In this document: positions 7,565-59,000 of the stretch, one piece after another
How positions within the stretch are numbered: the first letter of the stretch is position 1
Layout: each line of letters opens with the position of its first letter
Source: Guillardia theta CCMP2712
Taxonomy: Eukaryota; Protista; Cryptophyta
Length of the DNA stretch: 64,000 nt
Reading direction: 5' to 3'
NCBI RefSeq assembly: GCF_000315625.1
Contig: NW_005434472.1
Span: 1 to 64,000, forward strand
Position numbers and translations under genes: made by a program
The notes under the pieces: generated by a model
Told to the model about the DNA's origin: nothing
Database searches by the model: none
What the model saw: only the letters and a program-made list of their open reading frames with translations

Positions 7565-9210
7565 TCAACCTTTCATCAGTGGCGCATAACATCTCAGAAC
7601 ATTGTTTGCGGTGATAACAGCTAAATGACTCCTTGAATGATACGCATTGAAAACTGTCACCTAAACCTGTGTTAGCGTATGTCGATAGGGGAGATAACAT
7701 CCATCACCTTGCGGAGCACAAGGCAAGAGCCAGAAGTCAAATTGTCGCCTTCCTCCTCCAATACCTGCTGACTGTATCACATGGATATTCATCAACGCTG
7801 GTATGTACGTTTGCATGGATGGTTGCCTTCATCTCTCCTGTTGGGTCCTTGATAACCTGTTGTTGAGATCATTCCATCACAGTTCGGCGAATAACTGTAT
7901 GGATAGATACTGACCGCATCAGCACAATCATCTAGCAGATTAATAGATTTGACGAATGCAAAGAGCTTGGGAATCTTCTTGAGGTATCCATCTTTCAAGA
8001 CCTGAGCAATCGTTGTCTGTACAAGAGGGTGATTGCATGTCACTGTTGTAGCCCCTGGTGAAGTGGCTAGGTACACAATGTCATGCGCTTCACTTCCTTG
8101 CTGTCTCAGGTCACCTCTGAATGGAGGTATGTCCAAATCCTGACTTTGAAGTCAATTGCAAGGAACTCGTTTCAAAAAAGCAACCTTCAGCATCTTGAGC
8201 CAAGTCGGGGACGAGAAATCAGCATCATCGGGGTCTATCGATGCACGCTTGCGACGAAGAGGCAGCTCTAGCATTGTGGAAGTAGCAGGGGTCGCAGAGC
8301 ATTGAGTCATTCTGCTCAACACGGGATCAGGAACATATTCTAAGCAAGAAGAACATTTGCCAGTCAGAGGGATGATGAAGATGTAACGTGAAGAGAGTAA
8401 CATCAAAAACGTGGTATATGCATCGATGTCTTACGTCTCTTGCGTTGTTTGTGTCTCGCAGAACCCAGCAGGGCCAGGAATGCTTCGTGTTTCATCCTAC
8501 AATGCCATCAGCAAATCATCTTTTGCATTTTGTAATCAAACCACTTTCGAGTCTAGGCTGTCATGACATTCTTCTGGCAATTTCCAACGTTCTGCATTAG
8601 TCAGTACAGATGCTGTATATACTTCGCCTGAGAGAACTTCGTCTTCATTCCTTCTCCCCCTGAATGACTCCGTCTCTTTTTGAATGAACGAATGCCTCTC
8701 TGCTGGAATTTCTGATACTTGTCCCATCCTCTCAACTGTTCTGTTTTCTATATGTCTCACATCTTTTTGCGTAGATGAACTAGATCGTTGAGAAGGTTGA
8801 CTGTTCTGCCGATTTTCTCCGAAAACAAAGGCATTCCCCTGAGAAGTAGCACATTTGTCCTGGCTCTCGGACAGATGCTCGATATCGACACGTGAATGGT
8901 CTACCTTACGAGCAATCTGGCTGAATTTTTGACTATCATTGGGGGGGTTGAAGTCAAAGAGTTTCCCGCTACTTTGGGATGGGCGAACTGGCTGCGATGT
9001 TGACTGTGTATTCACAGTCGGCGAGATTTGTGGGCTCGTCAGCATCGATGAAGTATCATGGCTCTCCAGCATTGAACTTAGAAACAATCCTCTAGGGCGA
9101 GATGAAAGCGAGGAGGAGTCATCGATGTTCAGATCTTCATCTTCGTCTTCTACATTTCTTCGCCTTGCCCCGCTCGCCAGCGGCAACCTGGCATTGCCAA
9201 ACAGCGGCAT
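7565..9210 (-). CDS. HROB: HROB/MCM8IP (C17orf53)-like OB-fold homologous recombination factor
   Basis: Spliced C-terminus KKIPKLFAFVKSINLLDDCADA|VIKDPTGEMKATIHAN|VLEEEGDNLTSGSCLVLRK|VTVFNAYHSRSHLAVITANNVLRCY matches the DUF4539 pattern (xKDPTGEMxGTxH..LxxGSxLxL..NxTxxN). Disordered S/Q-rich N-terminus in ORF 8536-9210; stop TGA at 7567-7565. Confidence 0.8.
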
Positions 9211-12881: not shown

Positions 12882-15800
12882 ATGAAGAAGCATATTATCC
12901 TGAAGCACGCGGGCACCTCCCCCCTCCCTGCTTCTCCTCCTCTTCCTTCGTCTCCTTCATTGAACCCCAAGGAGTCTTGTGGCCTCACGGTGCATTCTCC
13001 CAGCCAGCCGGCTGGGTGGGAAACCGTCTCCGATGGATGGATTGGCTTCAAGAAACTTCGCAGATTTCTGGAACATGGAGGGAATGGCGCAGTGGTTCCC
13101 GATGGTGAAGATAATGGAACCAAAAGTCATGGACTTGTAGATAGAGTTAATTGCTCTTCACACGGAGGAGTGGTTGTCGAAAGCAAACAGACCGGGAAGC
13201 CCGAAGTCCCTGCCCTGCAAAGCGATCACAAGGCGGCAGAGAATGATGCTGAAGGTAATGATCTTCTCTCCCTCGTGTTCGCATGAACGACTTTCCTGAT
13301 TTGTTCTGCTCAGGAGCGTGTGGGCCGAAGGAACTGGCTTCTGAAAATGCGGGGAAGGTTTGGCCGAAGAATGGAGCACAAACAGAGGTCAAATCGCACG
13401 AGGATGTTGAGACTCCCCCGTCGGAGCATGCTGCTAAGGTGAAATCTTCTTGTCGACCATCTCATAGACCTGACATGTTCCCCCTTCATTTTCGATGCTT
13501 CCAGAAGGAAAGTTCAAAAGCCTCAGAAGAGCCTTTAGCTCAAGCGGACGAAGTTCGCAGTGAAGATGTGTATGTCAAGGAGGATGTGCAAGAAAAATCA
13601 ACCAGCCTTAGAGAAGACCGAAAATCTCAGAACAAGGGTGAAGAAATGGAAATGCCTGCATTGGAGGCAAAGATTGGTGGGGCGTGGTTCGACATCGAAC
13701 TTCTCGGTGTTGATCCAGACGAGGACTTGTTCCATGTTATGGGAAGGGATACGGGTGAAAAGGAATGGGTGACTTGCCAGGAGGTGAGATTGCAGTGCCA
13801 GCCATACGAGAACAAGCCTAGCGTTGGTACGACAGTCTGCTTGTTTCGGACCGCCGACAATGAACAGTTGTACTACGACGCAGTTGTTGATAGTGAGAAA
13901 AAGGACAACAAATTCTTCGTCACACTGCTTGATGGACCAGAGAAGGGTAAAAAGGTTGTTGCCAAGCTCCAAGACATCTATGAAATCAGCAGCGAAAAGC
14001 TACCTATCTCGTCATTACGATCGTGGTGCAAGGCAGTGTACAGAAAGGTTGATTCGCTACCAAAAGTTGTAAACCTCAAGAAGGGTGATTATGCCATGTT
14101 CGAAGCTCCAGGAAACGAGAACTTTCGAGTTGCTCAGCTTCGGGAGCCCTACACAGCTGAAATTCAGGAAGAGGTCGACGAGGACGAAGATGGACCTGAG
14201 ATTCGTGTTCGGTGGATGTTCACTGCGCAACAACTCAAGAAAAAGCGAAAGAAATTGCTCAAAGGGGAGGACACAGACGAACATGAGGTATTTGTTTCAG
14301 ACATGGAGTCGTTGATAGATGCCAGACTCATCGTAGATCAATGCTTCGTGAGTATTGTTGAACACCCTCCGGACACAAAGGATTGGGCCAACAATCGGTT
14401 TTTTGCCAACAGGGTTTTTGATCGTTCAGAATACAAGATAGTTTCTATTTCTGATGAATCCCTTGATCTGAAGCTAAAGAAAATCGTGAAGAGGCTTCTC
14501 TCTCGCAACAGAAAAAACGGTGATAAGGTCCACGATGCAGAGGATGGAAACGACATTGATTCGCATGAAGTCCAGAAAGAAGATTCGACCCCCGCACATC
14601 GGAAATCAAATCATTCAGATGCTTCAATTGATCATCCTTCCAAGAAGTCGCTTCCTTCCGGTGAAGAAAGCAGTGAAGATTTCACCAAGAATCCAAAGCA
14701 AGTAAAGGATAGGCTATCTAACAAAATGCCAGCTAAGGAGAATGCTGTTCAAGTTGTGGCGCACGACGATGAAAAGCGGTCTCCAAGCGAAAAGAGCCAC
14801 AACAAGGGAGATGAGAATGGTAGTCGCAAACGAAAAAGTAGTGAACTGGATGATACCGCGCGTGCTGAGAGTGAAGGGAGGTGCAAGAGTGAAACGAACA
14901 AGCGCAGTCCTAAGAAATCACATGGGATCTCGCCAGCGCAGGTGTCGGCAGATCGAAAAGTTAAGCTGGAGAAGGAGCCTCATTTGCAGAAGATAGGCAG
15001 TACTACGAAACGCGAAGATGTTGATGAGAAAAGGGACAAGACGACGACGAAGTCAGATAGTAACAACAAACGGTCTGAAAAGAATGTTGTGATGGAGCTC
15101 TCAATCCCCAAAGTGGGGTCGAAGCAATCAAAACCATCCTCAGGTGAAAATGAAAAGAGGATAACCAGCCACGAGAAGGCTTCTGGAAACAAGAAAGAAA
15201 TCAAGAGAACAGAAGAGCTTCATACCAAGAATGACAAGACATATCCCCCAAAGCACAATGCTTTAATTAACACGTCTCTAACTTCAGACATGAATTCGCA
15301 TGCAGATACACAAGCTAAGACGGGCGGCATTAGGTCGGCAGCGACAATCCAGGCAATCCAGGGAAATTCTTCAAAAAAGTCCTCCTCGGGGGGGATACAG
15401 CAAGAGCATCATAAGCAGACTGAAGGAGGCAAAGCTTGCAGTCAATCTGCAAGTTCACTTCCATCCAAGGTCGATAATGCACATGTGAAGTGCAACATCA
15501 ATAACTTGGGTCATGATGTTGAAATTTCAAAGGGGCTAGATGACGATGGAACAAGTCGCAACTTTGACGCTTTGACGAATTCCTGTGAACTAAAATTAGG
15601 ATCCCCGCGCAAAGACTCAGTTGAGATGTACGACCCAGCAGAGATCTCTGACGATCTCGACGCCACAGTTGTGAAGAAGCGTACAAGTCCAGTTTTTGAT
15701 CATGGCCAGACTGATTCTGAGTCGGGACGGAAATACGGACCGGAAACCATGTCGGACTGTCCCGCAACTGATGAAGCTGACCATCAAGAATCGCAGAACA

Positions 15801-16879
15801 CCGTGAAGGCAAGTAAGAAGCCGCTGACGACTTACCTCCCTGAGCTATCCCTCCCAGTCCTACCAGGATTGGCCGACCATGGCCATGAAAGGACACAAGA
15901 GACGAAAGAAAACGACAACTTTGAGAATCGGGGGTCTGAGAGGAAGCATTCAAAGCCCGCGGACTCTTCTTTTGGGAATGAGAAGTCCAAGAGACGCAAG
16001 ACGACGGCCCATGTGCAGTCTTTCCGCATCTCGATCCTGCAGTGCAAATGGAAGTTCATTGCGTATCAGCACGTGGATGGGGGGAAGAAGGTTGAAGATG
16101 TCAGCTTCGGAGAGGGCGAGAATGTCCATTGTGCGCTGAGCTTCCGGGACGACCGGGACAGAGCCATCTGCGATGAGCAGACCATCACAGCGGTGACTAA
16201 GACGCTTCGCTTCCTCGTCTCCGGTGCGAGCTCGACGGACCAGGATGAAGTGTTGACACCCTTGGAGACGAGCTCGTTTGGGGAGGTGTTCTGTTGTCAG
16301 GTGAACATCGGGAAGGCGGGGACGTACACCCTTCAGCCCTTCCTGGTTGACGACAAGGATGTCAGGCACCTGATTGGCTCTCCGGAAAGGGTCGTGATCA
16401 CCCCAGGGAAGGTGCCTCTGCTCTGTTCGGAAATCTCTTTGTTCGAGGTTGGACGAGGACAGAAGCTGGTCAGTCTATGCTCGCCTCCAGGCTCAGGGTC
16501 AGCCGAGCAGGTTTGCGCTGCTGGGATCGTGTCACGTGGCGCAAAGATTGAGGTTGAGATCTCGTTCAATCCAGCCCACTGTGGGGATGGAGGGAAGATA
16601 GATGAGAAGCAAGCGCAACGAGTCCTTTCGCAGCTGCAAATGCGCTGGGTCAAGCCGGTGCAACTCAAGGAGGACGTGTGGAAGGCTGGTGGCTCTGAGG
16701 GCTCGAGCGTCTGCATGGCAGCGGAGGTGGTTGAGGTAAAGCCGCAGATGCTGAGCATGACCGACTCGTCCGCCCGGGTTGCCTCGTTGCAGTTTGACAT
16801 CGTCGGATGTCATGTACTTGTAGCCAAGTTCGACGATGGGCCGAAGACCTTCCGCTTTGACTTAGCTTGTTGTGTATAA
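12882..16879 (+). CDS. Chromatin reader: SAWADEE-like tandem Tudor + BAH domain + long charged disordered region + filamin/Ig-like C-terminal domains
   Basis: 1198-aa ORF 13283-16879 joined in frame to ORF 12882 through a GT-AG intron at 13255-13313. LEAKIGGAWFDI..EWV..VRLQCQP..VGTTVCLF..EQLYYDAVV is the SAWADEE pattern. LKKGDYAMF..FRVAQL..IRVRWMF..HEVFVS..IVDQCFV..FFANRVFD is the BAH pattern. AGTYTL..HLIGSPERVVITPG is filamin-like. True start may lie further upstream. Confidence 0.75.
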
Positions 16880-22915: not shown

Positions 22916-25710
<2,795 letters not shown>

Positions 25711-27917: not shown

Positions 27918-28522
27918 NNNNNNNNNNNNNNNNNNNNNNNNNNNNNNNNNNNNNNNNNNNNNNNNNNNNNNNNNNNNNNNNNNNNNNNNNNNNNNNNNNN
28001 NNNNNNNNNNNNNNNNNNNNNNNNNNNNNNNNNNNNNNNNNNNNNNNNNNNNNNNNNNNNNNNNNNNNNNNNNNNNNNNNNNNNNNNNNNNNNNNNNNNN
28101 NNNNNNNNNNNNNNNNNNNNNNNNNNNNNNNNNNNNNNNNNNNNNNNNNNNNNNNNNNNNNNNNNNNNNNNNNNNNNNNNNNNNNNNNNNNNNNNNNNNN
28201 NNNNNNNNNNNNNNNNNNNNNNNNNNNNNNNNNNNNNNNNNNNNNNNNNNNNNNNNNNNNNNNNNNNNNNNNNNNNNNNNNNNNNNNNNNNNNNNNNNNN
28301 NNNNNNNNNNNNNNNNNNNNNNNNNNNNNNNNNNNNNNNNNNNNNNNNNNNNNNNNNNNNNNNNNNNNNNNNNNNNNNNNNNNNNNNNNNNNNNNNNNNN
28401 NNNNNNNNNNNNNNNNNNNNNNNNNNNNNNNNNNNNNNNNNNNNNNNNNNNNNNNNNNNNNNNNNNNNNNNNNNNNNNNNNNNNNNNNNNNNNNNNNNNN
28501 NNNNNNNNNNNNNNNNNNNNNN
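27918..28522. other. Assembly gap
   Basis: N run. Confidence 1.
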
Positions 28523-28829
28523 ACCGGGAAGGGGGTAACAGGAACATGAAGCAGGGGAAGGTGCAGGAGCCAGAGCAGCTGTCAGACCCGGCATCGGGTA
28601 TGGAGTCTATTGGCAGCAGGTGCCGGTCTTGGGGTTTTGAGGGGGGAAGAGAGAGCAGGTGTTGTGCTTTTTGCAAGTGATCTCTTTTTCAGCCCCATGG
28701 AAAAGGGATACAAACAAACAAGAGCCACCAATTGGCAAAGGTAGGAGAACCTTGCAGAGATCGAATTTTGCTGATAATTGTTGGTGAGAAGTTGATTTAC
28801 TTGTCCATGCAGATGTCACTCAAAGGGAA

Positions 28830-31800
28830 ATGGAATTCAAACTTCATGGGTGGAACTTCTCTGCCATCAAAGCGCCCATCATTTCATCGCATGATTCCGA
28901 CAAGTGTGATCCTTGTTTTGTTTCTTGATGGCATTTGTGCTGAAACTCGATGAATCACATCAGTTGGACAAGAGAGTTGGATATGACACTGCCTGAAATG
29001 TGCTTCAGCAACTCAGTATTACGTATAGGGTGAGCAAGCATTCCTAATACGCCGTTGATTGAATTTTTTTTCACAGGAACGAGGGCATTGGCATGCAAAT
29101 AGAATTCAATGCTTATGATGCTTTGAAAACGGTGCTGCATGATTTTCTTGACACTCCTCGATTGATTTTTCCTAGTGCCCTAGCTCATCAGACTTGCAAG
29201 TGAGCGTGTCTGAAAGATGGAAAGCTAAGGCACGGGCGAAAGTTCCTGAAGCACACCAGTACGACTGGACGTATAGCACAAACTATAAGTAACCATCTTC
29301 ATGATACAGCTGTGTTTAAATTCTTGATTCTCAGGGGGACATTCAAGGATACTCGATCAGGGGAGCTAATCCAAGGAGCTGTTACAGAAAAGCGCATCGA
29401 TTTCGAAAGCCTCAAGGTGACCATCTTTCACATGCACTAGAAGTACATTATTTCAGTGATCTCTATTTACTTTCATGACAATTTAACGCACGTGCCTTTG
29501 CTTGCCATATTTGTTTGGGGGCTGTCTTGCTGTTTTTCACTTGTTGGTCTAGCCTCGTGCAGGAGAGAGTATCTTATGGTCGTCCGATGTTATTTTGTTT
29601 GAAGATGAACTTCATGATAATGGTAAAAACATTGTTTTCCACTGCTAAGATCTTCAGAGCTTATCTTCATGCAGGAACCAGTCAGCTGACTGTAAGAATT
29701 CGAGTTACCAATTCTTATTTTTATGTGTTGCAACGTCTCTGGGTGAGGGTTGATGGAGTGATATTTCGTCTAAAAGAGACCCGCCTGCATTTTCGTTTTG
29801 GAGACGAGTTTGCGCTACGACAATTCACGGAGAAATCGTCAGATTATCAAACGATTCTGTCTGGTTGCACCCAGAAGGAATTACGTGAGGGCATAATCAA
29901 TGAGCCGGATCAACTATCAGGACGGCTAGAGATGAAAACCGACGAGACAAAGATATTCTCCTTCATGCCTCACAGTTTGCAAACTCCCGGAAATACTATT
30001 GTAAGTGATGCCCTTTTTTCTCTTTCTCCCAAAACTGAACGAAAATTCAAAGTGACAGCCTTTTCAAAATTCAGGATCGCCTATTTGAGGGCCAAAGAGA
30101 ATCAAGAGCTGATACAATTGTATCAGGAGGGGAGCCTGATATACAACAACTTCAAAGAAACAAAGAAACTCAACATAACGATATAGAAAAAAGCAATAGA
30201 ATAGCAGAACAACAATTCAAACAAAAATATGGGAACGCCAAGCCGAACGCGGGGGCGCTGCTTCAGCGGCAGCGGCAGCACGAGACGAGGTATTTCGACT
30301 CCGGGGACGCCTTCTCGAAGAAGGGGTCAGGGCCAGGGAAGGCGGAGGAGAAGCTTGAGCCACTTGCGGTAGTCCAGGGACAGCTAGAGGAGGGGGGAAC
30401 GGAGGAGGACCAGGAGATCGCTCGGAAGAACGCGGAGGCTGAGGCTGCGTTCAAGCTGAAGTTTGGGAACGCCAAGCCGAACGCGGGGGCGCTGCTTCAG
30501 CGGCAGCGGCAGCACGAGACGAGGTATTTCGACTCCGGGGACGCCTTCTCGAAGAAGGGGTCAGGGCCAGGGAAGGCGGAGGAGAAGCTTGAGCCACTTG
30601 CGGTAGTCCAGGGACAGCTAGAGGAGGGGGGAACGGAGGAGGACCAGGAGATCGCTCGGAAGAACGCGGAGGCTGAGGCTGCGTTCAAGCGGAAGTTTGG
30701 GAACGCCAAGCCGAACGCGGGGGCGCTGCTTCAGCGGCAGCGGCAGCACGAGACGAGGTATTTCGACTCCGGGGACGCCTTCTCGAAGAAGGGGTCGGGG
30801 CCAGGGAAGGCGGAGGAGAAGCTTGAGCCACTTGCGGTAGTCCAGGGACAGCTAGAGGAGGGGGGAACGGAGGAGGACAAGGAGATAGATCGGAAGAAAG
30901 CGGAGGCTGAGGCTGCGTTCAAGCGGAAGTTTGGGAACGCCAAGCCGAACGCGGGGGCGCTGCTTCAGCGGCAGCGGCAGCACGAGACGAGGTATTTCGA
31001 CTCCGGGGACGCCTTCTCGAAGAAGGGGTCAGGGCCAGGGAAAGGCGGAGGAGAAGCTTGAGCCACTTGCGGTAGTCCAGGGACAGCTAGAGGAGGGGGG
31101 AACGGAGGAGGACCAGGAGATCGCTCGGAAGAACGCGGAGGCTGAGGCTGCGTTCAAGCGGAAGTTTGGGAACGCCAAGCCGAACGCGGGGGCGCTGCTT
31201 CAGCGGCAGCGGCAGCACGAGACGAGGTATTTCGACTCCGGGGACGCCTTCTCGAAGAAGGGGTCAGGGCCAGGGAAGGCGGAGGAGAAGCTTGAGCCAC
31301 TTGCGGTAGTCCAGGGACAGCTAGAGGAGGGGGGACGAGGAGACCCGGACGAAGTCGCGAACGGTCCGGAAACGAGACCGACTCGGAAGAACGCGGACGC
31401 TGAGGCTGCGTTCAAGCGGAAGTTTGGGAACGCCAAGCCGAACGCGGGGGCGCTGCTTCAGCGGCAGCGGCAGCACGAGACGAGGTATTTCGACTCCGGG
31501 GACGCCTTCTCGAAGAAGGGGTCAGGGCCAGGGAAGGCGGAGGAGAAGCTTGAGCCACTTGCGGTAGTCCAGGGACAGCTAGAGGAGGGGGGAACGGAGG
31601 AGGACCAGGAGATCGCTCGGAAGAACGCGGAGGCTGAGGCTGCGTTCAAGCGGAAGTTTGGGAACGCCAAGCCGAACGCGGGGGCGCTGCTTCAGCGGCA
31701 GCGGCAGCACGAGACGAGGTATTTCGACTCCGGGGACGCCTTCTCGAAGAAGGGGTCGGGGCCAGGGAAGGCGGAGGAGAAGCTTGAGCCACTTGCGGTA

Positions 31801-32520
31801 GTCCAGGGACAGCTAGAGGAGGGGGGAACGGAGGAGGACCAGGAGATCGCTCGGAAGAACGCGGAGGCTGAGGCTGCGTTCAAGCGGAAGTTTGGGAACG
31901 CCAAGCCGAACGCGGGGGCGCTGCTTCAGCGGCAGCGGCAGCACGAGACGAGGTATTTCGACTCCGGGGACGCCTTCTCGAAGAAGGGGTCGGGGCCAGG
32001 GAAGGCGGAGGAGAAGCTTGAGCCACTTGCGGTAGTCCAGGGACAGCTAGAGGAGGGGGGAACGGAGGAGGACCAGGAGATCGCTCGGAAGAACGCGGAG
32101 GCTGAGGCTGCGTTCAAGCGGAAGTTTGGGAACGCCAAGCCGAACGCGGGGGCGCTGCTTCAGCGGCAGCGGCAGCACGAGACGAGGTATTTCGACTCCG
32201 GGGACGCCTTCTCGAAGAAGGGGTCAGGGCCAGGGAAGGCGGAGGAGAAGCTTGAGCCACTTGCGGTAGTCCAGGGACAGCTAGAGGAGGGGGGAACGGA
32301 GGAGGACCAGGAGATCGCTCGGAAGAACGCGGAGGCTGAGGCTGCGTTCAAGCGGAAGTTTGGGAACGCCAAGCCGAACGCGGGGGCGCTGCTTCAGCGG
32401 CAGCGGCAGCACGAGACGAGGTATTTCGACTCCGGGGACGCCTTCTCGAAGAAGGGGTCAGGGCCAGGGAAGGCGGAGGAGAAGCTTGAACCCGTTTCAG
32501 TTTTTCGTGATTTCTCGTAA
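28830..32520 (+). CDS. TIPRL: TIP41/TIPRL (PP2A regulator) fused to 10 tandem endosulfine/ARPP19-like repeats
   Basis: Spliced exons MEFKLHGWNFSAIKAPIISS|..LPEMCFSNSVLRI|..IEFNAYDALK|..YDWTYSTNY|..ILFEDELHDNG|TSQLTVRIRV..QRLWVRVDGVIFRLKETR match TIP41. Intron 30001-30074 leads in frame to ..AEQQFKQKYGNAKPNAGALLQRQRQHETRYFDSGDAF repeats. 5' end is next to a gap and uncertain; 1-nt insertion at ~31041-31043. Confidence 0.85.
30231..32489 (+). repeat. Coding tandem array, 234-bp (78-aa) unit, 10 FDSGD motifs
   Basis: TATTTCGACTCCGGGGAC at about 30291, 30525, 30759, 30993, 31228, 31486, 31720, 31954, 32188, 32422; one 258-bp variant unit and one 235-bp unit. Confidence 0.95.
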
Positions 32521-50099: not shown

Positions 50100-53000
50100 T
50101 AAGTGAAGGGAAGAGCAACCGAAGTCTCCACCCCCGTGAGGTCCCTCGTGATGCTCGACTCCTGCCCTTGACCCTCAGCGGTACACTTCCTCCTCTCTGC
50201 CGACTCACGAAGGTCTTGCCGACGACTCCTACCGCTCCGAGCACGTGCCTCAACTTCCTATTGGTCCTCTGTTGAACGGCCATACGATGAGAGGCAGGAT
50301 AGGGAAGGGCAGGAGCAGGGGAAGCGAGAGGAGGGATAGAGGGGGAGATAGTCACGGACAGGGAGGGAGAGAAAGAAGGGAAGCGGGGAGAGGAGGGTGT
50401 TGATGGAGAAAGAACTCGCCTCCTTCGACTCGCACATCCTTGTCAGAGCCTCACAGTTCAACGTTAACCTTGCAATCTCTTCCTTGGCCTTGGCAACCTG
50501 CGGGGATGTGAGTGAGGGGAGCCGAAAGCGTGGGAAGCAGCGTCACGTCCGATTCGAGGAGCTGGATGTGTTGGCCCTGCTCTCTGATCTTCGCGTCTCT
50601 CGCTTCAAGATTCCTTATCAGCTCGCCGCAGAAACTTTTGGGGGTCAGTCAGTGGACGTCAAACGGCGCGGGAAATCATACCGGCAAAGCCAATCGACAT
50701 CGAGGAAGAAGAGGCTCAGCTCTTCCATCCACCCCACCAACGAGTCTCGCAGTGCAGACTCTCGTCCTCGAGACTGATCCAAGGCCAACGAGCCCTGAGC
50801 CAGGAGCTCCTGTCCACGGCTATCAGCTCCTCCCCTTTCGCAGCACGTTCAACTCGCTCACTTGCAGCCTTGTCACGAGCTGCTCGTTCTCACTGTTCTT
50901 TGCCTCCAAAGAGTCTTTCAGCTCACTCATGATCGACTGATGGGACCACAAGTAAGGTCGCAACCCAGGGCTGTTGAAGGGCGAGGCACGTACCAGCTCA
51001 TCGGCCAGCACTCGTTTCTGCGACTTGACGTTGCCCAGCTCGAGTTGCAGGCCCCGGATCAATTCGCTCTCCCTGAGAAATTCTCGCTGGAAACGAGTCA
51101 GCTCCTCCAAGTGTTGCCGAGAGAGAGAGTCGAGCCGCGATTGTTGATCTCTGAATTCCAGGATCTGTCGACTGCTCTCGGCTTCCTTCCTCTGGGCCTC
51201 AAGCGCTTCCCGCTCGTCCCTCGCCCTCTGTGGATCAAGTTGTCAGAAGACACCTTCAAAGTGACTTACCCGGACACCTCTTGGCTCTCCCTCCAACCGC
51301 ACAGGCCGGAGGACAGGAGCAGCTTCCTGTTGGCAGCATCGCGATCGAGTTGGAACGACTTGAGATGGCACACACGATCTGACCAGCACACGAGGACACT
51401 TTTCGACATTCGCCATCGCTGCCGATTGAGAAGGATACAAAGAATATTCTTGTACTTCAGCGAGGCCCTGCTCGTTTCCTTCCACTGATTCCACGACACC
51501 GCGAGATCCAGTCGTTTCCATCGCAGCATAACTCGTGCACCAATCATTCCGAGTCGGTCAGCAAACGAGTAGACCTTGACCCAAGCCCCAAACGATTGCG
51601 ACAGAGCATTTCGATTCTTCATGCTGCTTCCAAGACGAACATCCTTGATAGTGGGCAGCTGACAATGAAAGCGAATAAATGCCGAGGCCTTTAGTCTCAT
51701 CAAGTGACCGGCAACGCAGCGACTGATAATAAACTTGCAAGTCTTTCCGAAAGCAACAGAGTTCGACCAATTTCTGATCACCATCCTCAGCAACATAAAA
51801 GAGGAGAAAACATCGAAAGAAGACTTGCGTGGTACATCCACATCAAGAGATAGTCTCCAAACATCAAAGGCCCTCGCCATCCCTCCCTTCGCCCACCGCG
51901 TCGCTGTCCGCCTCCCTATCCGTCGCAGCTCTTGCTTCCTCTGCACGTGCTCCATCCAGCCTCCCAGAGACGTCGCCAGGCTCAGCCCCCGCCACCGCTT
52001 GATGATCTGCTGTCCTGTGACCCGCCGGGTCTTGACCTGCTCGCACAGCCCCTCCCAGGACCTCAAGCTCCCGACCAGCGTCAGCCTCAGGTCGATCTTC
52101 CGGAAGCTCGAGCCGATCCTGCTTATCGTCTCCTCCATCAGCCTCCTGGCCTCCGTTACCTCTGCCCAGCTTGTCCAGCTCTCGCCCAGCCGGAGCTTGC
52201 TCCACCGCCGGACGATCTTGCCCGCTCGCTCTCGCATGGCGACCCGTCGGTCGACGTTGGCTATCCACCCTTGCATGGCTGCCGCGAGTTTGCTATTCCA
52301 TATCCTCCTGGCTGCCTTGTCTAGGCTCTCCTGCTGGCTCTGCGACACCTCTAGAGCGCTCGTCCACGTCTCGAAGCAGTACATCACGCGCCCGTGTACC
52401 CATCGTCTCAATACCCGACTGCACACTCGCTGTAGCGCCTGCCGCCTCGCATGGTCCGCTTTCCAGCTGCTCAGCCCCCGCCAGAGCAGCCCCTTCTGCC
52501 ACCGGCCTGCACATCGCTGCAGCACCATCCTCGCATGTCCCTCCTCTACCCAGTGCTCTACCCACCTGCTGTAGCACTTGCCCAGGCTCCGCTGTAGCCA
52601 CCGCCGAGCGACGCTCCGTCCTTTCTCGCGCAGCGCCTTGCCTCGTATGTGCGCCCTTGCCAGGGCTCGTAGCGCTCGCGTGCAAGCCCTCCTGCGCCGA
52701 CCCTCCACGTGTACCTGCAGAGCCTCCCAGCGACCCTTGCGGTCGCTGATGCCGTCGCGTAGAGCCCGCGAGCCCTCCCAGGCCTCCTTCAGCCTGTTGA
52801 AGCACCTCCATACTGCCAGGTTCCGTACCCTCCGCAGCGCCTTGCAGGTGATCTGCTTGAGCTCCTTCTTGTGTGCCCATGACTCTCCCCAGCCTGCCAT
52901 AGCCCTCGACGAGCACAGCCGCTCCCTCCGACCCGCCGCCCTCGCGTGCATCCTCCGGACAGTCGCGCGTCGGGCGGTCTCGTCGCGCCACCCGCGGAAG

Positions 53001-56000
53001 CTCTTGCTCTTGTACAGGTGGTTGAAGATGGCCATGTTCAGGTCAGCCTCTCCCCCGCTTGACTGCCGAAGGCTCTGGTGCGATACCCAGCTCTCGAAGG
53101 CCCTCGCCATCCCTCCCTTCGCCCACCGCGTCGCTGTCCGCCTCCCTATCCGTCGCAGCTCTTGCTTCCTCTGCACGTGCTCCATCCAGCCTCCCAGAGA
53201 CGTCGCCAGGCTCAGCCCCCGCCACCGCTTGATGATCTGCTGTCCTGTGACCCGCCGGGTCTTGACCTGCTCGCACAGCCCCTCCCAGGACCTCAAGCTC
53301 CCGACCAGCGTCAGCCTCAGGTCGATCTTCCGGAAGCTCGAGCCGATCCTGCTTATCGTCTCCTCCATCAGCCTCCTGGCCTCCGTTACCTCTGCCCAGC
53401 TTGTCCAGCTCTCGCCCAGCCGGAGCTTGCTCCACCGCCGGACGATCTTGCCCGCTCGCTCTCGCATGGCGACCCGTCGGTCGACGTTGGCTATCCACCC
53501 TTGCATGGCTGCCGCAAGTTTGCTATTCTTGAATGTCAGAGAAATCTTGAGCAATACGCGGTCAGTTTGAAGTGTGTCTTTCCACATCTCGAAGCAGGAC
53601 ATCACGCGCCCGTGTACCCATCGTCTCAATACCCGACTGCATACTCGCTGTAGCGCCTGCCGCCTCGCATGGTCCGCTTTCCAGCTGCTCAGCCCCCGCC
53701 AGAGCAGCCCCTTCTGCCACCGGCCTGCACATCGCTGCAGCACCATCCTCGCATGTCCCTCCTCTACCCAGTGCTCTACCCACCTGCTGTAGCACTTGCC
53801 CAGGCTCCGCTGTAGCCACCGCCGAGCGACGCTCCGTCCTTTCTCGCGCAGCGCCTTGCCTCGTATGTGCGCCCTTGCCAGGGCTCGTAGCGCTCGCGTG
53901 CAAGCCCTCCTGCGCCGACCCTCCACGTGTACCTGCAGAGCCTCCCAGCGACCCTTGCGGTCGCTGATGCCGTCGCGTAGAGCCCGCGAGCCCTCCCAGG
54001 CCTCCTTCAGCCTGTTGAAGCACCTCCATACTGCCAGGTTCCGTACCCTCCGCAGCGCCTTGCAGGTGATCTGCTTGAGCTCCTTCTTGTGTGCCCATGA
54101 CTCTCCCCAGCCTGCCATAGCCCTCGACGAGCACAGCCGCTCCCTCCGACCCGCCGCCCTCGCGTGCATCCTCCGGACAGTCGCGCGTCGGGCGGTCTCG
54201 TCGCGCCACCCGCGGAAGCTCTTGCTCTTGTACAGGTGGTTGAAGATGGCCATGTTCAGGTCAGCCTCTCCCCCGCTTGACTGCCGAAGGCTCTGGTGCG
54301 ATACCCAGCTCTCGAAGGCCCTCGCCATCCCTCCCTTCGCCCACCGCGTCGCTGTCCGCCTCCCTATCCGTCGCAGCTCTTGCTTCCTCTGCACGTGCTC
54401 CATCCAGCCTCCCAGAGACGTCGCCAGGCTCAGCCCCCGCCACCGCTTGATGATCTGCTGTCCTGTGACCCGCCGGGTCTTGACCTGCTCGCACAGCCCC
54501 TCCCAGGACCTCAAGCTCCCGACCAGCGTCAGCCTCAGGTCGATCTTCCGGAAGCTCGAGCCGATCCTGCTTATCGTCTCCTCCATCAGCCTCCTGGCCT
54601 CCGTTACCTCTGCCCAGCTTGTCCAGCTCTCGCCCAGCCGGAGCTTGCTCCACCGCCGGACGATCTTGCCCGCTCGCTCTCGCATGGCGACCCGTCGGTC
54701 GACGTTGGCTATCCACCCTTGCATGGCTGCCGCGAGTTTGCTATTCCATATCCTCCTGGCTGCCTTGTCTAGGCTCTCCTGCTGGCTCTGCGACACCTCT
54801 AGAGCGCTCGTCCACGTCTCGAAGCAGTACATCACGCGCCCGTGTACCCATCGTCTCAATACCCGACTGCACACTCGCTGTAGCGCCTGCCGCCTCGCAT
54901 GGTCCGCTTTCCAGCTGCTCAGCCCCCGCCAGAGCAGCCCCTTCTGCCACCGGCCTGCACATCGCTGCAGCACCATCCTCGCATGTCCCTCCTCTACCCA
55001 GTGCTCTACCCACCTGCTGTAGCACTTGCCCAGGCTCCGCTGTAGCCACCGCCGAGCGACGCTCCGTCCTTTCTCGCGCAGCGCCTTGCCTCGTATGTGC
55101 GCCCTTGCCAGGGCTCGTAGCGCTCGCGTGCAAGCCCTCCTGCGCCGACCCTCCACGTGTACCTGCAGAGCCTCCCAGCGACCCTTGCGGTCGCTGATGC
55201 CGTCGCGTAGGGCCCGCGAGCCCTCCCAGGCCTCCTTCAGCCTGTTGAAGCACCTCCATACTGCCAGGTTCCGTACCCTCCGCAGCGCCTTGCAGGTGAT
55301 CTGCTTGAGCTCCTTCTTGTGCGCCCATGACTCTCCCCAGCCTGCCATAGCCCTCGACGAGCACAGCCGCTCCCTCCGACCCGCCGCCCTCGCGTGCATC
55401 CTCCGGACAGTCGCGCGTCGGGCGGTCTCGTCGCGCCACCCGCGGAAGCTCTTGCTCTTGTACAGGTGGTTGAAGATGGCCATGTTCAGGTCAGCCTCTC
55501 CCCCGCTTGACTGCCGAAGGCTCTGGTGCGATACCCAGCTCTCGAAGGCCCTCGCCATCCCTCCCTTCGCCCACCGCGTCGCTGTCCGCCTCCCTATCCG
55601 TCGCAGCTCTTGCTTCCTCTGCACGTGCTCCATCCAGCCTCCCAGAGACGTCGCCAGGCTCAGCCCCCGCCACCGCTTGATGATCTGCTGTCCTGTGACC
55701 CGCCGGGTCTTGACCTGCTCGCACAGCCCCTCCCAGGACCTCAAGCTCCCGACCAGCGTCAGCCTCAGGTCGATCTTCCGGAAGCTCGAGCCGATCCTGC
55801 TTATCGTCTCCTCCATCAGCCTCCTGGCCTCCGTTACCTCTGCCCAGCTTGTCCAGCTCTCGCCCAGCCGGAGCTTGCTCCATCTGTTTAGGATCGACAC
55901 ACATTTTGTTTTGGTCTGCTTTCGCGATTTTGTGTGTTTTATCCATTGATCTACTGCATTTTGGAGAATTTTTGTTTTGCACATCACGTCACAGTACGAT

Positions 56001-59000
56001 GATATTCGTGATTTTAATGTAACGGGGGCTCCATCAGAATCGGCGTCTGTTTGACTCTGGAATATACGGTTGACCAGCAACTTCTCTGAACGTTTGAATC
56101 TTTGATGATTCTCGAACCACAAATGTATCAATTTCGCGCCGGTAGAGCAAGACTTGAATTTCGATTTTAGTTCAAAAATCTTGTTCCAATCTTGTACCGC
56201 TATTAACATGCATTTCCATATTCCCATGGCATGACTCAGACATGAGCTGATCCGCATTTTTCCGCATCTGAACATGACTTGGGCTCTGTGGTTCCTGGTA
56301 CTCACTGCATGCTGTCGGAGAATAAACCAGCATTTTCTAGTTCCAAGGAAGTTTTGCGCTGCCTTAGCAAAGCCAGCTTTCTTCTGTTGTTCTTCATTGA
56401 AGACACAAATCTCTTCCAAAAACCCAACGACACGCGATTTCGCTCGCTCTAGAGTTTTTATGAACATTCGCCTTGCGATTGCGACTAGATACAATTTTCC
56501 ATCCTTTTGTGATGGATTTGAGCATCCTAGTCTTCTTCGAAGCTTTAATTTTCTGCAATTTTTTCTGCAACAATTTGTTCTTGCAAACATGATATTTCCA
56601 CTGATTGAACAACACTCTGCTGTACCTTGATGAATTCACCTGTGCAACGGATTGAATGGAAGTGATTTTCTTATTTTATGCTTTCTGCTTTGGACGCTTG
56701 AAAGAAAAAGTCTGACCCATGCCTTGAGTGCATATCTGAGTCTTCGCTTCAAAAGCATCTTGGATGAAACAGTTGAAACTAAGATAACTTTTGACGAGAC
56801 TCCACTGGCATTCCGCCAGTCATTGAATGCCGCGGAAGACGAAAGGCGCCTTCTATTATGAGCAAGCAAAGAAACACGATATTGAATAGCTTCTTTCTCA
56901 CAATCTTGTTGTTTCCAAATTTCAAAATGGTTCAGAAGGCAAACATACTGTTGTTTAAGAGAAATCTTTTTGCCATTCTGGACCTTCTCTTCAACCCTTG
57001 AAGCGCGGCAAATGCCTTACAAGAGCATCGTACCATTGAGTTGCCTCGTATTCTTCCCTCTTTCATCTTTCTACCTTTCTTTTGAACGATGTAATGCATC
57101 CACATGTTGAACAAGGTTTTCAAGCCCATCAGTCTTGCTTTTGATATCCGAAAGTGCCTTTGCTTCTTGTACAAACACCTCCATGCCCAAGCATCGAAAT
57201 ACTCGGCCAATTGACTTGTACGGTTTCGTGAATTCACACGTTTCAACACAAACTTCCGCACAGAGGGTGGCAACCCATCTCCATACAAGTCTTCCCATCC
57301 CGATGAACCTGACAGCCGATCGGCGACGAAATTGAGCTGCTCTTCTTCCTCACCAGACTGTAACATTCGTTGGAAAGAATCATGAGTGGGATTCATGACG
57401 GGCCCTGTTTCCAATTTCTCGATTGCGCTGGGCTCCAGGGCCCGGCTAGGGTTCATCTCAAGTCTCTGCACATCAGAAACGGGGTTTGGAGAAGACTCCG
57501 CCATCGCCTCGTGGTCTTTTCGTACTTGCAGTTGTTGGTACTTCTCTCTCTCCGAACAAAGCACTTGCTGGAGTTCGTCATGCTGCTGGCTGAGGGTAGC
57601 ATACGCATCCTTTGAGGCTTGAAGATCCTCCTGCAACTTTTTGGCCTCCATCGCTAGCGAGTTTGATTTTGACTTCAGCATCTCTGCCAAAGAATCCGTC
57701 CTGTCCTTTGCCTCTTGGACCAACAAATCGCTCGCATGCAGCTGTTCTTGCAATGCTACAATCTCTCCATCCTTAGCCTGCAAGTGCATGCTCATCTCTT
57801 CCAACATCCTCTTATCTCCGTCACAGCGGACTTCCATTATCTGTAGGTCTTCCTCGAGCCTTTGCTTCTCTGTCTGCCACTGATGGCTGAGTTGCATGAA
57901 TTCTTCTCCAAAGAGTTTCGCTTGGTTCTCAACCATTTCCCTTCTCTTCTTTTCGTTTTCCAGTTCCCTCAGGAGTGCTTCAATGTCTTGCTGCAGCCTG
58001 TCGTCCTCGTGGCCACGAGCACACGGGGTCTGCAAGAGCATCCTTTCCCCTCATGATGGCTGTGAACCAGAGACTTGTCAAGAAGGAGACTCTCGTTAGG
58101 GTGTAGGTTCTCAAAGCACTTCTCGATTGAATCGATCGCATGCTGCATATGCTCTATCCGCTGATTCAAATTCTCTTCGCCTGAAGTTCCCTCGACCCCC
58201 TCCTCTCCATCGATTTCGTGCAGAATCTCCTGTGTTTCATTAATGTTGCTCTCTAACTCGGCTTCCAGCGCACATATGGTCCGCCGCATGTGCTCCTGCA
58301 GGAGTTCATGGTTGGATTCTAGCTGAGAGAACTTCTGTTCTATCTTTGAGATCAACGTCCCCACTCCTCTGTACAGGCGAGCTTCTTCCAGGAGCAGGTA
58401 CATGTCCTTGGTCTGAACGCTCTCTCAGTAACTCACATGAGCCAACCAACTTCAGACGATCTCACATCCTCAACGAAGTTCAAGGGAGCTCTCACGCACA
58501 CGACGACCTGCTCCAATCCGCTGCCGGCCCTGCGGACTTTGAGGGACACCTGTCGTGGAGCTCAGGGTCAGTCGAGACGTCGTCTTGATGCTTCAGCACC
58601 TTTGAGCCGACTATGTTGCTTCCTCGAACTGCATCAACAACGGTCTCTGGATCGACGGGCCTATCATCCACCGCCAGAATCTGATCGTCGATTTCAAGCC
58701 TGCACAAAGTTCAGGGTCGGTCGCTTTTCTCGCAGGACCAAAGGCTCACTTCTTCCCCACTATCGGCCTGGAGCCAGGAGATCCCGGTATGACAAACTTG
58801 ACCCGACAGCCTGTCAATATGACCCCAATAGTTGTACCAGTGCTCCCTGAAATGACAAAGGCGTGCTCCCGCTGAAACTCCGCGATGACTTCTTTTGGAT
58901 TTCTCTGTGAGGACGCAGATTAGTAGGCAGATAGGCAGGAAAGCAACACATGCAGAACAGATGCACGAGGAAAACGATCGAAGAGAGTGATTCATTGTGT
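50100..59000 (-). CDS. Giant PDZ + coiled-coil + Sfi1-repeat (centrin-binding) cytoskeletal protein with C-terminal coiled coil
   Basis: PDZ-like TIGVILTGCRVKFVIPGSPG..|LEIDDQILAVDDRPV..AVRGSNIVGSKV (~58840-58590); coiled-coil ORFs 57969-58403 and 56932-58041; 1774-aa ORF with L/F-x2-W motifs at 33-aa spacing; coiled-coil exons 51110-50200. Ends and single-gene status inferred. Confidence 0.7.
51866..55881 (-). repeat. Near-identical coding tandem repeat, 1230/1218/1230-bp units (about 3.3 copies)
   Basis: CCCTCGCCATCCCTCCCTTC at about 51871, 53101, 54319, 55549. Confidence 0.93.

Follow-up and report, generated by a model that had tools for sequence, protein, structure and literature searches.

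A single nuclear gene of the cryptophyte alga Guillardia theta CCMP2712 joins two families of protein phosphatase 2A (PP2A) regulators: in the stretch analysed here (positions 1 to 64,000 of contig NW_005434472.1, forward strand; hereafter the window), a TIP41/TIPRL domain is connected to endosulfine (ENSA/ARPP19/Igo) modules in one spliced mRNA and one reading frame. Its product, consisting of the TIP41/TIPRL domain, a linker and an endosulfine array, probably serves as a multi-site inhibitor of PP2A. TIP41 and endosulfine are conserved regulators of PP2A-family phosphatases that have been studied as separate pathways; in yeast, TORC1 acts upstream of both, through Tap42-Tip41 on one branch and Rim15-Igo-PP2A(Cdc55) on the other. 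To our knowledge, hardly any work exists on cell-cycle and nutrient signalling in cryptophytes, a group of algae of ecological importance. A preliminary description of this DNA, made from the sequence alone, had proposed the fusion and knew of no earlier account of it, and full-text literature searches agree: they returned no TIP41-endosulfine fusion, no tandem endosulfine array, and no endosulfine in Guillardia or other cryptophytes. Both families are well known, and their combination in this architecture appears to be undescribed.

Contigs from public sequencing runs (named X1, X5, X10, X17 and so on) were aligned to positions 28650-30470 of the window. Those of X1 and X5, runs of different studies, are spliced and therefore derived from RNA. 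Their GT..AG introns lie at 28741-28812, 28904-28963, 29030-29076, 29132-29175, 29289-29334, 29623-29674 and 30001-30074, and a further intron at 29417-29552 is supported by X5 only. The splice joints are compatible with a single set of GT..AG boundaries, which yields one open frame from ATG 28830 that encodes, in order, TIP41 (262 amino acids), a linker (43 amino acids) and the endosulfine units. The most upstream joint, 28738 to 28811 in the X1 and X5 contigs, is cut at +2, which sets the exon end at 28740 and the next exon start at 28813. The resulting gene has eight coding exons, the TIP41 part of the coding sequence reaching position 30000, where a 74-nt intron joins it in frame to the linker and the array. 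The features, all on the + strand, are as follows.

28690-28740 (+): 5' untranslated exon, 3' end only; from the sequence and a joint in the X1 and X5 cDNA contigs
28813-28903 (+): exon with the start codon ATG 28830 (MEFKLHGWNF...); from spliced contigs, its N-terminus aligning with relatives
28964-29029 (+): TIP41 exon (..TLPEMCFSNSVLRIG); from spliced contigs and the sole boundary set with one open frame
29077-29131 (+): TIP41 exon, IEFNAYDAL, holding the N68 and D71 equivalents; from spliced contigs, the open frame and alignment with relatives
29176-29288 (+): TIP41 exon; from spliced contigs and the open frame, with a Pfam TIP41 match at 29176-29295
29335-29416 (+): TIP41 exon, RIDFESLK, with the I136 equivalent; from spliced contigs, the open frame and alignment with relatives
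29553-29622 (+): TIP41 exon, ILFEDELHDNG; from spliced contigs and the open frame
29675-30000 (+): last TIP41 exon; PF04176 at E 1.7e-16, profile positions 113-173 of 174, and spliced contigs
30001-30074 (+): 74-nt GT..AG junction intron; from the joint 30000 to 30075, flanked by 185 and 64 nt, in contigs of two runs that belong to separate studies
30075-30203 (+): AT-rich linker of 43 amino acids, G+C content at third codon positions (GC3) 0.19; aligns with the linker of a Rhodomonas lens transcript
30204-31140 (+): endosulfine units 1-4 (starting at 30204, 30438, 30672 and 30906); in the TIP41 frame as far as the frameshift
31041-31043 (+): AAA run with a +1 frameshift, other units having AA, and a stop at TGA 31059-31061; from unit comparison and translation
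31141-32520 (+): endosulfine units 5-10 (starting at 31141, 31399, 31633, 31867, 32101 and 32335); open in the +1 frame

The junction reads as first described, the TIP41 frame ending in ..PGNTI at 30000, followed by GTAAGT at 30001 and TTCAG ending at 30074, and the next exon translating as DRLFEGQRES...; the intron that had been proposed from these letters is indeed spliced in the contigs of both studies. The second X1 record (571 nt) covers 29563-29621, 29674-30000 and 30075-30259, and thus runs from the TIP41 exons through the junction into the GC-rich repeat. Retention of the intron, which would put a TIP41 stop at 30186 and give TIP41 alone, was considered and rejected: coverage within 30001-30074 is exactly zero, the depth of its bin being the share of nine exonic bases, as judged from contigs, which a minor intron-retaining isoform could escape. 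In X5 the collapsed contig of the repeat unit has a depth of 4319 compared with 472 for the TIP41 exons, a ratio of about nine, much as expected if some ten units were each as abundant as the TIP41 exons. The raw RNA of X17 contributed 19 aligned reads, too few to reveal strand or junction.

Two ATGs precede the start codon: one at 28697, in the 5' untranslated exon, opens a short reading frame in the spliced mRNA, and the other, at 28813, is out of frame and lies 17 nt ahead of ATG 28830. Control of the fusion gene by such upstream reading frames is possible. The promoter region is missing from the assembly, since a run of 605 undetermined bases (27918-28522) stops some 170 nt short of the first exon observed in transcripts.

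The stretch 29674-30000 matches the Pfam family TIP41 (PF04176, cut-off 25 bits) with 60.7 bits and an expectation value (E) of 1.7e-16, and a second TIP41 exon (29176-29295) matches with 26.2 bits. Relatives of the fusion protein from other sequence collections (P numbers, described below) cover the profile more fully: P0056, P0069 and P0032 span positions 1-174 at E ~1e-49, P0056 being placed on positions 1-173 of 174 and matching human TIPRL (5W0W) with E 3e-37. The spliced model from the window aligns end to end with relatives at 51-54% identity. Residues of TIPRL responsible for binding PP2A-family catalytic subunits are D71, I136, T138, F180, M196, D198 and R200 (PMC4973239); with P0056 as the bridge to TIPRL chains, the window is identical at D71, I136, F180 and R200, conservatively altered at two positions (M196L and D198E), and changed at the remaining one (T138F). 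An AlphaFold model of P0056 (residues 20-450) gives the TIP41 domain a predicted local distance difference test (pLDDT) score of ~90 and renders the units as low-confidence helix-turn-helix segments, as expected for an inhibitor predicted to be disordered. A search of the ESM Atlas with P0056 gave no usable match.

Downstream of the linker, Tandem Repeats Finder places a single array at 30230-32489 (period 234 nt or 78 amino acids, 9.6 copies, 95% matches, score 4135), and anchoring on the YFDSGD codons resolves it into ten units between 30204 and 32520. The 78-residue repeat and ten RYFDSGD sites of the preliminary description were thereby located, with Tyr codons at 30291, 30525, 30759, 30993, 31228, 31486, 31720, 31954, 32188 and 32422. 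Both Pfam families that it had named are found, since Endosulfine (PF04667, cut-off 29.8 bits) matches four stretches with 75.2 bits (E 4.2e-21) and six stretches with 107.9 bits (E 2.6e-31), a single unit alone scoring 27.7 bits, slightly below the cut-off. Except in the AT-rich beginning of unit 1, the window units are 98-100% alike, which indicates concerted evolution or recent expansion; unit 5 carries an in-frame insertion of 24 nt. No Met codon occurs in the array in either frame (328 and 490 residues), and canonical translation of the units must therefore begin at the TIP41 ATG. GC3 differs strongly within the gene, being 0.45 in the TIP41 part, 0.19 in the linker and 0.81 in the array (likewise 0.55 versus 0.85 in a related metagenome contig, L013), a contrast that suggests GC-biased gene conversion in the array. 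A semi-conserved P-L-A-V-V-Q-G-Q is found about 27 amino acids past the phospho-acceptor Ser in most lineages (in the window, for example, at 30357-30380), altered to PQPIDVLGG in P0031 and P0003 and to PEPVLVAM in P0006; it could correspond to the segment near the C-terminus of ARPP19 that binds B55, or else mark a site of processing.

A profile of the units finds ARPP19 in the PP2A:B55 complex 8TTB as its best match in the PDB, weakly (E 0.09) and in register on YFDSGD; a PDB search with a single unit gave no match. ARPP19 contacts B55 through Y36 and helix 3 (F48, L49, R50, R52, L53 and K55), and its kink at Y59, F60 and D61 places thiophosphorylated S62 on the catalytic metals, with D64 bridging to the PP2A catalytic subunit (PP2Ac) (PMC10765524). 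In ARPP19 numbering, the units retain Y59, F60, D61, S62, G63 and D/E64, and have Phe or Tyr at 36 and Leu-Leu at 48-49. R-Y-F-D-S-G-D is present in all ten window units, and T-R-Y-F-D-S-G is invariant across the 22 units compared among the window and eight relatives.

The TIP41-endosulfine architecture was sought in other organisms, as had been suggested, and is present both in a cryptophyte transcript and as single open reading frames (ORFs) on metagenome contigs. An exhaustive HMMER search with units 1-4 gave 22 proteins, and word-indexed searches gave more; in many of these proteins TIP41 and the units share one ORF. Metagenome contigs (Tara Oceans and others) encode TIP41 with two to six endosulfine units whose YFDSG cores are invariant. 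P0056 (721 amino acids, a complete TIP41 domain and five units) is intronless on three Tara Oceans scaffolds; P0069 (634 amino acids) has four units that are 64-78% alike, P0030 (543 amino acids, in a 26-member cluster) has three, P0031 and P0029 have four each, and P0003, P0005, P0006 and P0033-P0036 share the same architecture. P0032 is the transcript of Rhodomonas lens (Cryptophyceae; MMETSP0484), in which TIP41, the linker and a first unit are followed by the end of the contig. On L013 an 85-nt GTTAGT..CAG intron (7773-7857) comes directly after the last TIP41 exon, which reaches 7772, and the spliced frame enters six 234-nt units that are 99% alike. TIP41 matches from organisms other than cryptophytes (fungi and an insect) contain PF04176 only.

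Comparison of the 22 units identifies 19 invariant positions, forming the core AE..F..K.G..P.A.A...R....TRYFDSG.AFS, whereas the spacers between the cores diverge. A window unit and an L013 unit are 65% identical in DNA, with a ratio of nonsynonymous to synonymous substitution rates (dN/dS) of 0.33 overall and 0.21 in the core; judged by these comparisons, the core of each unit is under purifying selection. In P0069, P0056 and P0029, units of the same protein are only 59-87% alike (59-78% in P0069 and P0056) and still keep the core, which argues that the multi-unit state is old and maintained. The junction intron is in phase 0 in the window and in phase 1 in L013, and the L012, L021 and P0003 contigs lack it, their ORF being uninterrupted; a former intergenic spacer may have left this intron behind. 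Both L013 (5287-5874, - strand) and L021 (2800-3951, - strand) carry a SnoaL_3/DUF4440 gene upstream of the fusion gene and in divergent orientation to it. No match to it was found by tblastn in the window, where the gap 27918-28522 sits just upstream of the fusion gene.

Searches of the 87.1-Mb genome (669 contigs) returned the fusion locus as the sole TIP41 match and also as the sole endosulfine match (E up to 1, with the profile of 22 units), a result that a small, intron-split endosulfine gene could have escaped. A homologue of TAP42/alpha4 is present on another contig (PF04177, 28.2 bits). No protein record of this genome containing the array was found (lengths 191-1262 amino acids), in a collection that may not include records of the genome.

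PP2A inhibition by the fusion protein, its phosphorylation by Greatwall and any effect of avidity are predictions, and so is the proposal of the preliminary description that the protein might act as an avid or ultrasensitive phosphatase sponge between TOR and Greatwall signalling. In the proposed mechanism, a kinase of the Greatwall/Rim15 type would phosphorylate the Ser of YFDSGD in each unit, and each phosphorylated unit would occupy a PP2A-B55 holoenzyme as phospho-ARPP19 does. A single polypeptide would thus offer several stoichiometric inhibitor sites, four as assembled or ten if the extra A described below is an error. Through its TIP41 domain this polypeptide would also bind catalytic subunits of the PP2A family, the alpha4/TAP42 partner being encoded in the genome as well, and two classic TOR-responsive PP2A brakes would then be produced in a constant ratio, with dosage and location in common. 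Human TIPRL is reported to favour the PP2Ac tail when it is unmethylated, to overlap with the site of B subunits and, with alpha4, to take holoenzymes apart (PMC5741625). More speculatively, and with a low likelihood, the fusion may be a two-stage device for PP2A shut-off, in which phosphorylated units clamp several methylated PP2A-B55 molecules and the tethered TIP41 domain then decommissions the catalytic subunits. If so, Greatwall-ENSA inhibition would be mechanically coupled to TOR-linked TIP41/alpha4 latency, and the number of units would set the threshold.

Several observations weigh against a multi-site PP2A inhibitor. Because the places that TIPRL and B subunits take up on the PP2A core overlap (PMC5741625), the TIP41 domain and the units would not canonically sit on one phosphatase complex; they should act on different phosphatase molecules, or sequentially. 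The units also depart from ARPP19 in part: helix-3 residues R50 and R52 align with Gln, the Arg being shifted by one position, and the Tyr of the canonical FDSGDY (Y65) is replaced by Ala-Phe. Neither a B55 subunit nor a Greatwall/Rim15 kinase was identified in the genome: a short B55 signature of 19 residues gave no match, which is uninformative where genes are rich in introns, and no search aimed at Greatwall/Rim15 was made. The depth of the unit contig in X1 is 29 times that of the TIP41 exons (window 30230-30470), more than ten copies would give; 3' bias, extra RNA from the array alone or a larger number of units in the strain concerned are possible causes. Contigs assembled from short reads are unable to show a single molecule across the whole array, and the product as assembled has 590 amino acids and four units, compared with 1076 amino acids and ten units without the extra A.

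The unit count depends on this one base. Unit 4 is 235 nt long owing to an extra A (GGGAAAGG at 31041-31043, with GGGAAGG in every other unit), so that the frame from 30075 stops at TGA 31059-31061 after four units, and units 5-10 lie in the +1 frame, which ends at TAA 32518-32520. The preliminary description was therefore mistaken in reading the array without a stop, and its roughly ten-fold multiplication of the phospho-site stands for the DNA, which has ten sites, and falls to four units for the TIP41 frame as assembled. On balance the extra A is rather likely to be an assembly error, in which case the product has 1076 amino acids and ten units. An added homopolymer base is a typical sequencing error, and units 5-10 keep an open frame of 490 amino acids that ends just past the last core, in the same place as in relatives, the wrong frame of the array having two stops per unit. 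The 101-nt query 30995-31095 comprises seven indexed 31-mers, and exactly three of them occur in each of the 20 runs with any match. Four of the 20 are DNA runs from what is likely the source sample, and 97-100% of the unique flank is present in three or more of the four. The four missing 31-mers are most likely those spanning the extra A. It is appreciably less probable, and still a serious prospect, that the frameshift is real and that a protein of 590 amino acids with four units is followed by units 5-10 as an untranslated, recently disabled tail shaped by concerted evolution. Such an account takes the assembly, with its stop in unit 4, at face value; relatives function with two to six units; and the absence of the variant from contigs does not disprove it, since contigs drop rare variants and lose minority variants of a repeat. 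Runs X24, X25, X27 and X28, labelled 'lake water metagenome' or 'metagenome', share the three repeat 31-mers of the culture runs, which places the unit DNA, or that of a near-identical relative, in environmental samples.

The main alternative to multivalent inhibition is that the fusion is a polyprotein, cut between units, as polyubiquitin is, into free TIP41 and many endosulfine monomers of ~78 amino acids. Endosulfine inhibition is stoichiometric, so dosage matters, and a cut array would supply high dosage in place of multivalency; the unit size of 78-97 amino acids is close to that of a stand-alone endosulfine, and the P-L-A-V-V-Q-G-Q motif in the spacers of many lineages could be the processing site. 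This motif is, however, absent or altered in some lineages (P0031, P0003 and P0006) and could instead match the C-terminal B55-binding segment of ARPP19 (residues 86-112; PMC10765524), and no protease site is recognisable. Processing into monomers is considered improbable. Far less credible is the proposal that TIP41 is the sole functional part and the array a neutral, expandable tail of low complexity. The 98-100% likeness of the window units might indeed result from recent slippage or unequal crossing-over, and unit number differs between relatives, but a neutral tail would hardly keep its core invariant in 22 units of at least nine proteins while the spacers diverge, with a core dN/dS of 0.21; the old units of P0069 and P0056, 59-78% alike, retain it also, and the genome has no other endosulfine match. 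The least probable account, to which almost no credence is given, is that assembly joined an unrelated GC-rich repeat to TIP41 near 30230. G+C content does rise from ~0.40 to 0.65 at 30200-30250, in a scaffold of draft quality with runs of N, but the first half-unit, AT-rich and reading AEQQFKQKYGN, keeps the register of the repeat, and the junction is crossed without a break by the RNA contig that ends at 30259 and by a DNA contig of X10. The latter is colinear over 28668-30456, and hence there is no misjoin at 30230. A misjoin at this position, which the preliminary description had named among three findings that would undo the fusion, is refuted by these contigs together with the orthologous loci, since the same order of domains recurs in independent contigs of other organisms; the other two do not apply either, as the junction intron is used and the Endosulfine model matches. 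A single uncut chain with several PP2A-B55 inhibitor sites and a TIP41 domain remains the favoured reading.

A natural fusion conserved within a clade constitutes 'Rosetta-stone' evidence that TIP41 and endosulfine act in the same process, and this one physically links two known routes of PP2A control in what appears to be the genome's one gene for either protein. Naturally multivalent endosulfines with two to ten units allow a test of how valency affects the stoichiometric 'unfair competition' inhibition of PP2A-B55.

Elsewhere in the window, a DEAH-box helicase (DEAD, Helicase_C and HA2 domains) is encoded at 22916-25327. Two ORFs of 1198 and 1774 amino acids, at 13283-16879 (+ strand) and 51266-56590 (- strand) respectively, are uninterrupted, which is unusual for an intron-rich genome; no Pfam family scored above cut-off in either.

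The fusion protein resembles TIP41/TIPRL (PF04176; PDB 5D9G and 5W0W) in having a full-length domain with key PP2Ac-binding residues kept, and differs from known TIP41 proteins, which are stand-alone and ~270 amino acids long, in that its C-terminus runs on into the endosulfine array. The units share with ENSA/ARPP19/Igo an acidic-Ala helix, K-x-K-[FY]-G, K-P, a hydrophobic/basic helix and Y-F-D-S-G-[DE], and the target Ser of ARPP19 with its flanking Y, F, D, G and D, which occupy the PP2Ac active site in 8TTB (PMC10765524), is invariant among them. Whereas ENSA and ARPP19 of animals and Igo1 and Igo2 of yeast are small proteins with a single motif, two to ten tandem units are found here within a larger protein; the gene in the window has ten of them behind TIP41, unlike a stand-alone, single-motif endosulfine, and its array lacks a separate start codon. 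Other eukaryotes also have endosulfine units in tandem, but with no TIP41 (proteins P0021, P0022 and P0028), including two units in Nolandella sp. (Amoebozoa, EukProt) and a JGI protein with four FDSAD sites, in which Pfam Endosulfine matches three stretches (103.6 bits). In organisation the gene parallels those for tandem-unit proteins homogenised by concerted evolution, such as polyubiquitin: its head-to-tail coding units are 98-100% alike within a genome and ~65% alike between species, and their number differs between lineages. In contrast to polyubiquitin, the units of the cryptophyte gene are putative phosphatase-inhibitor motifs, predicted to be disordered, that follow an unrelated folded domain.

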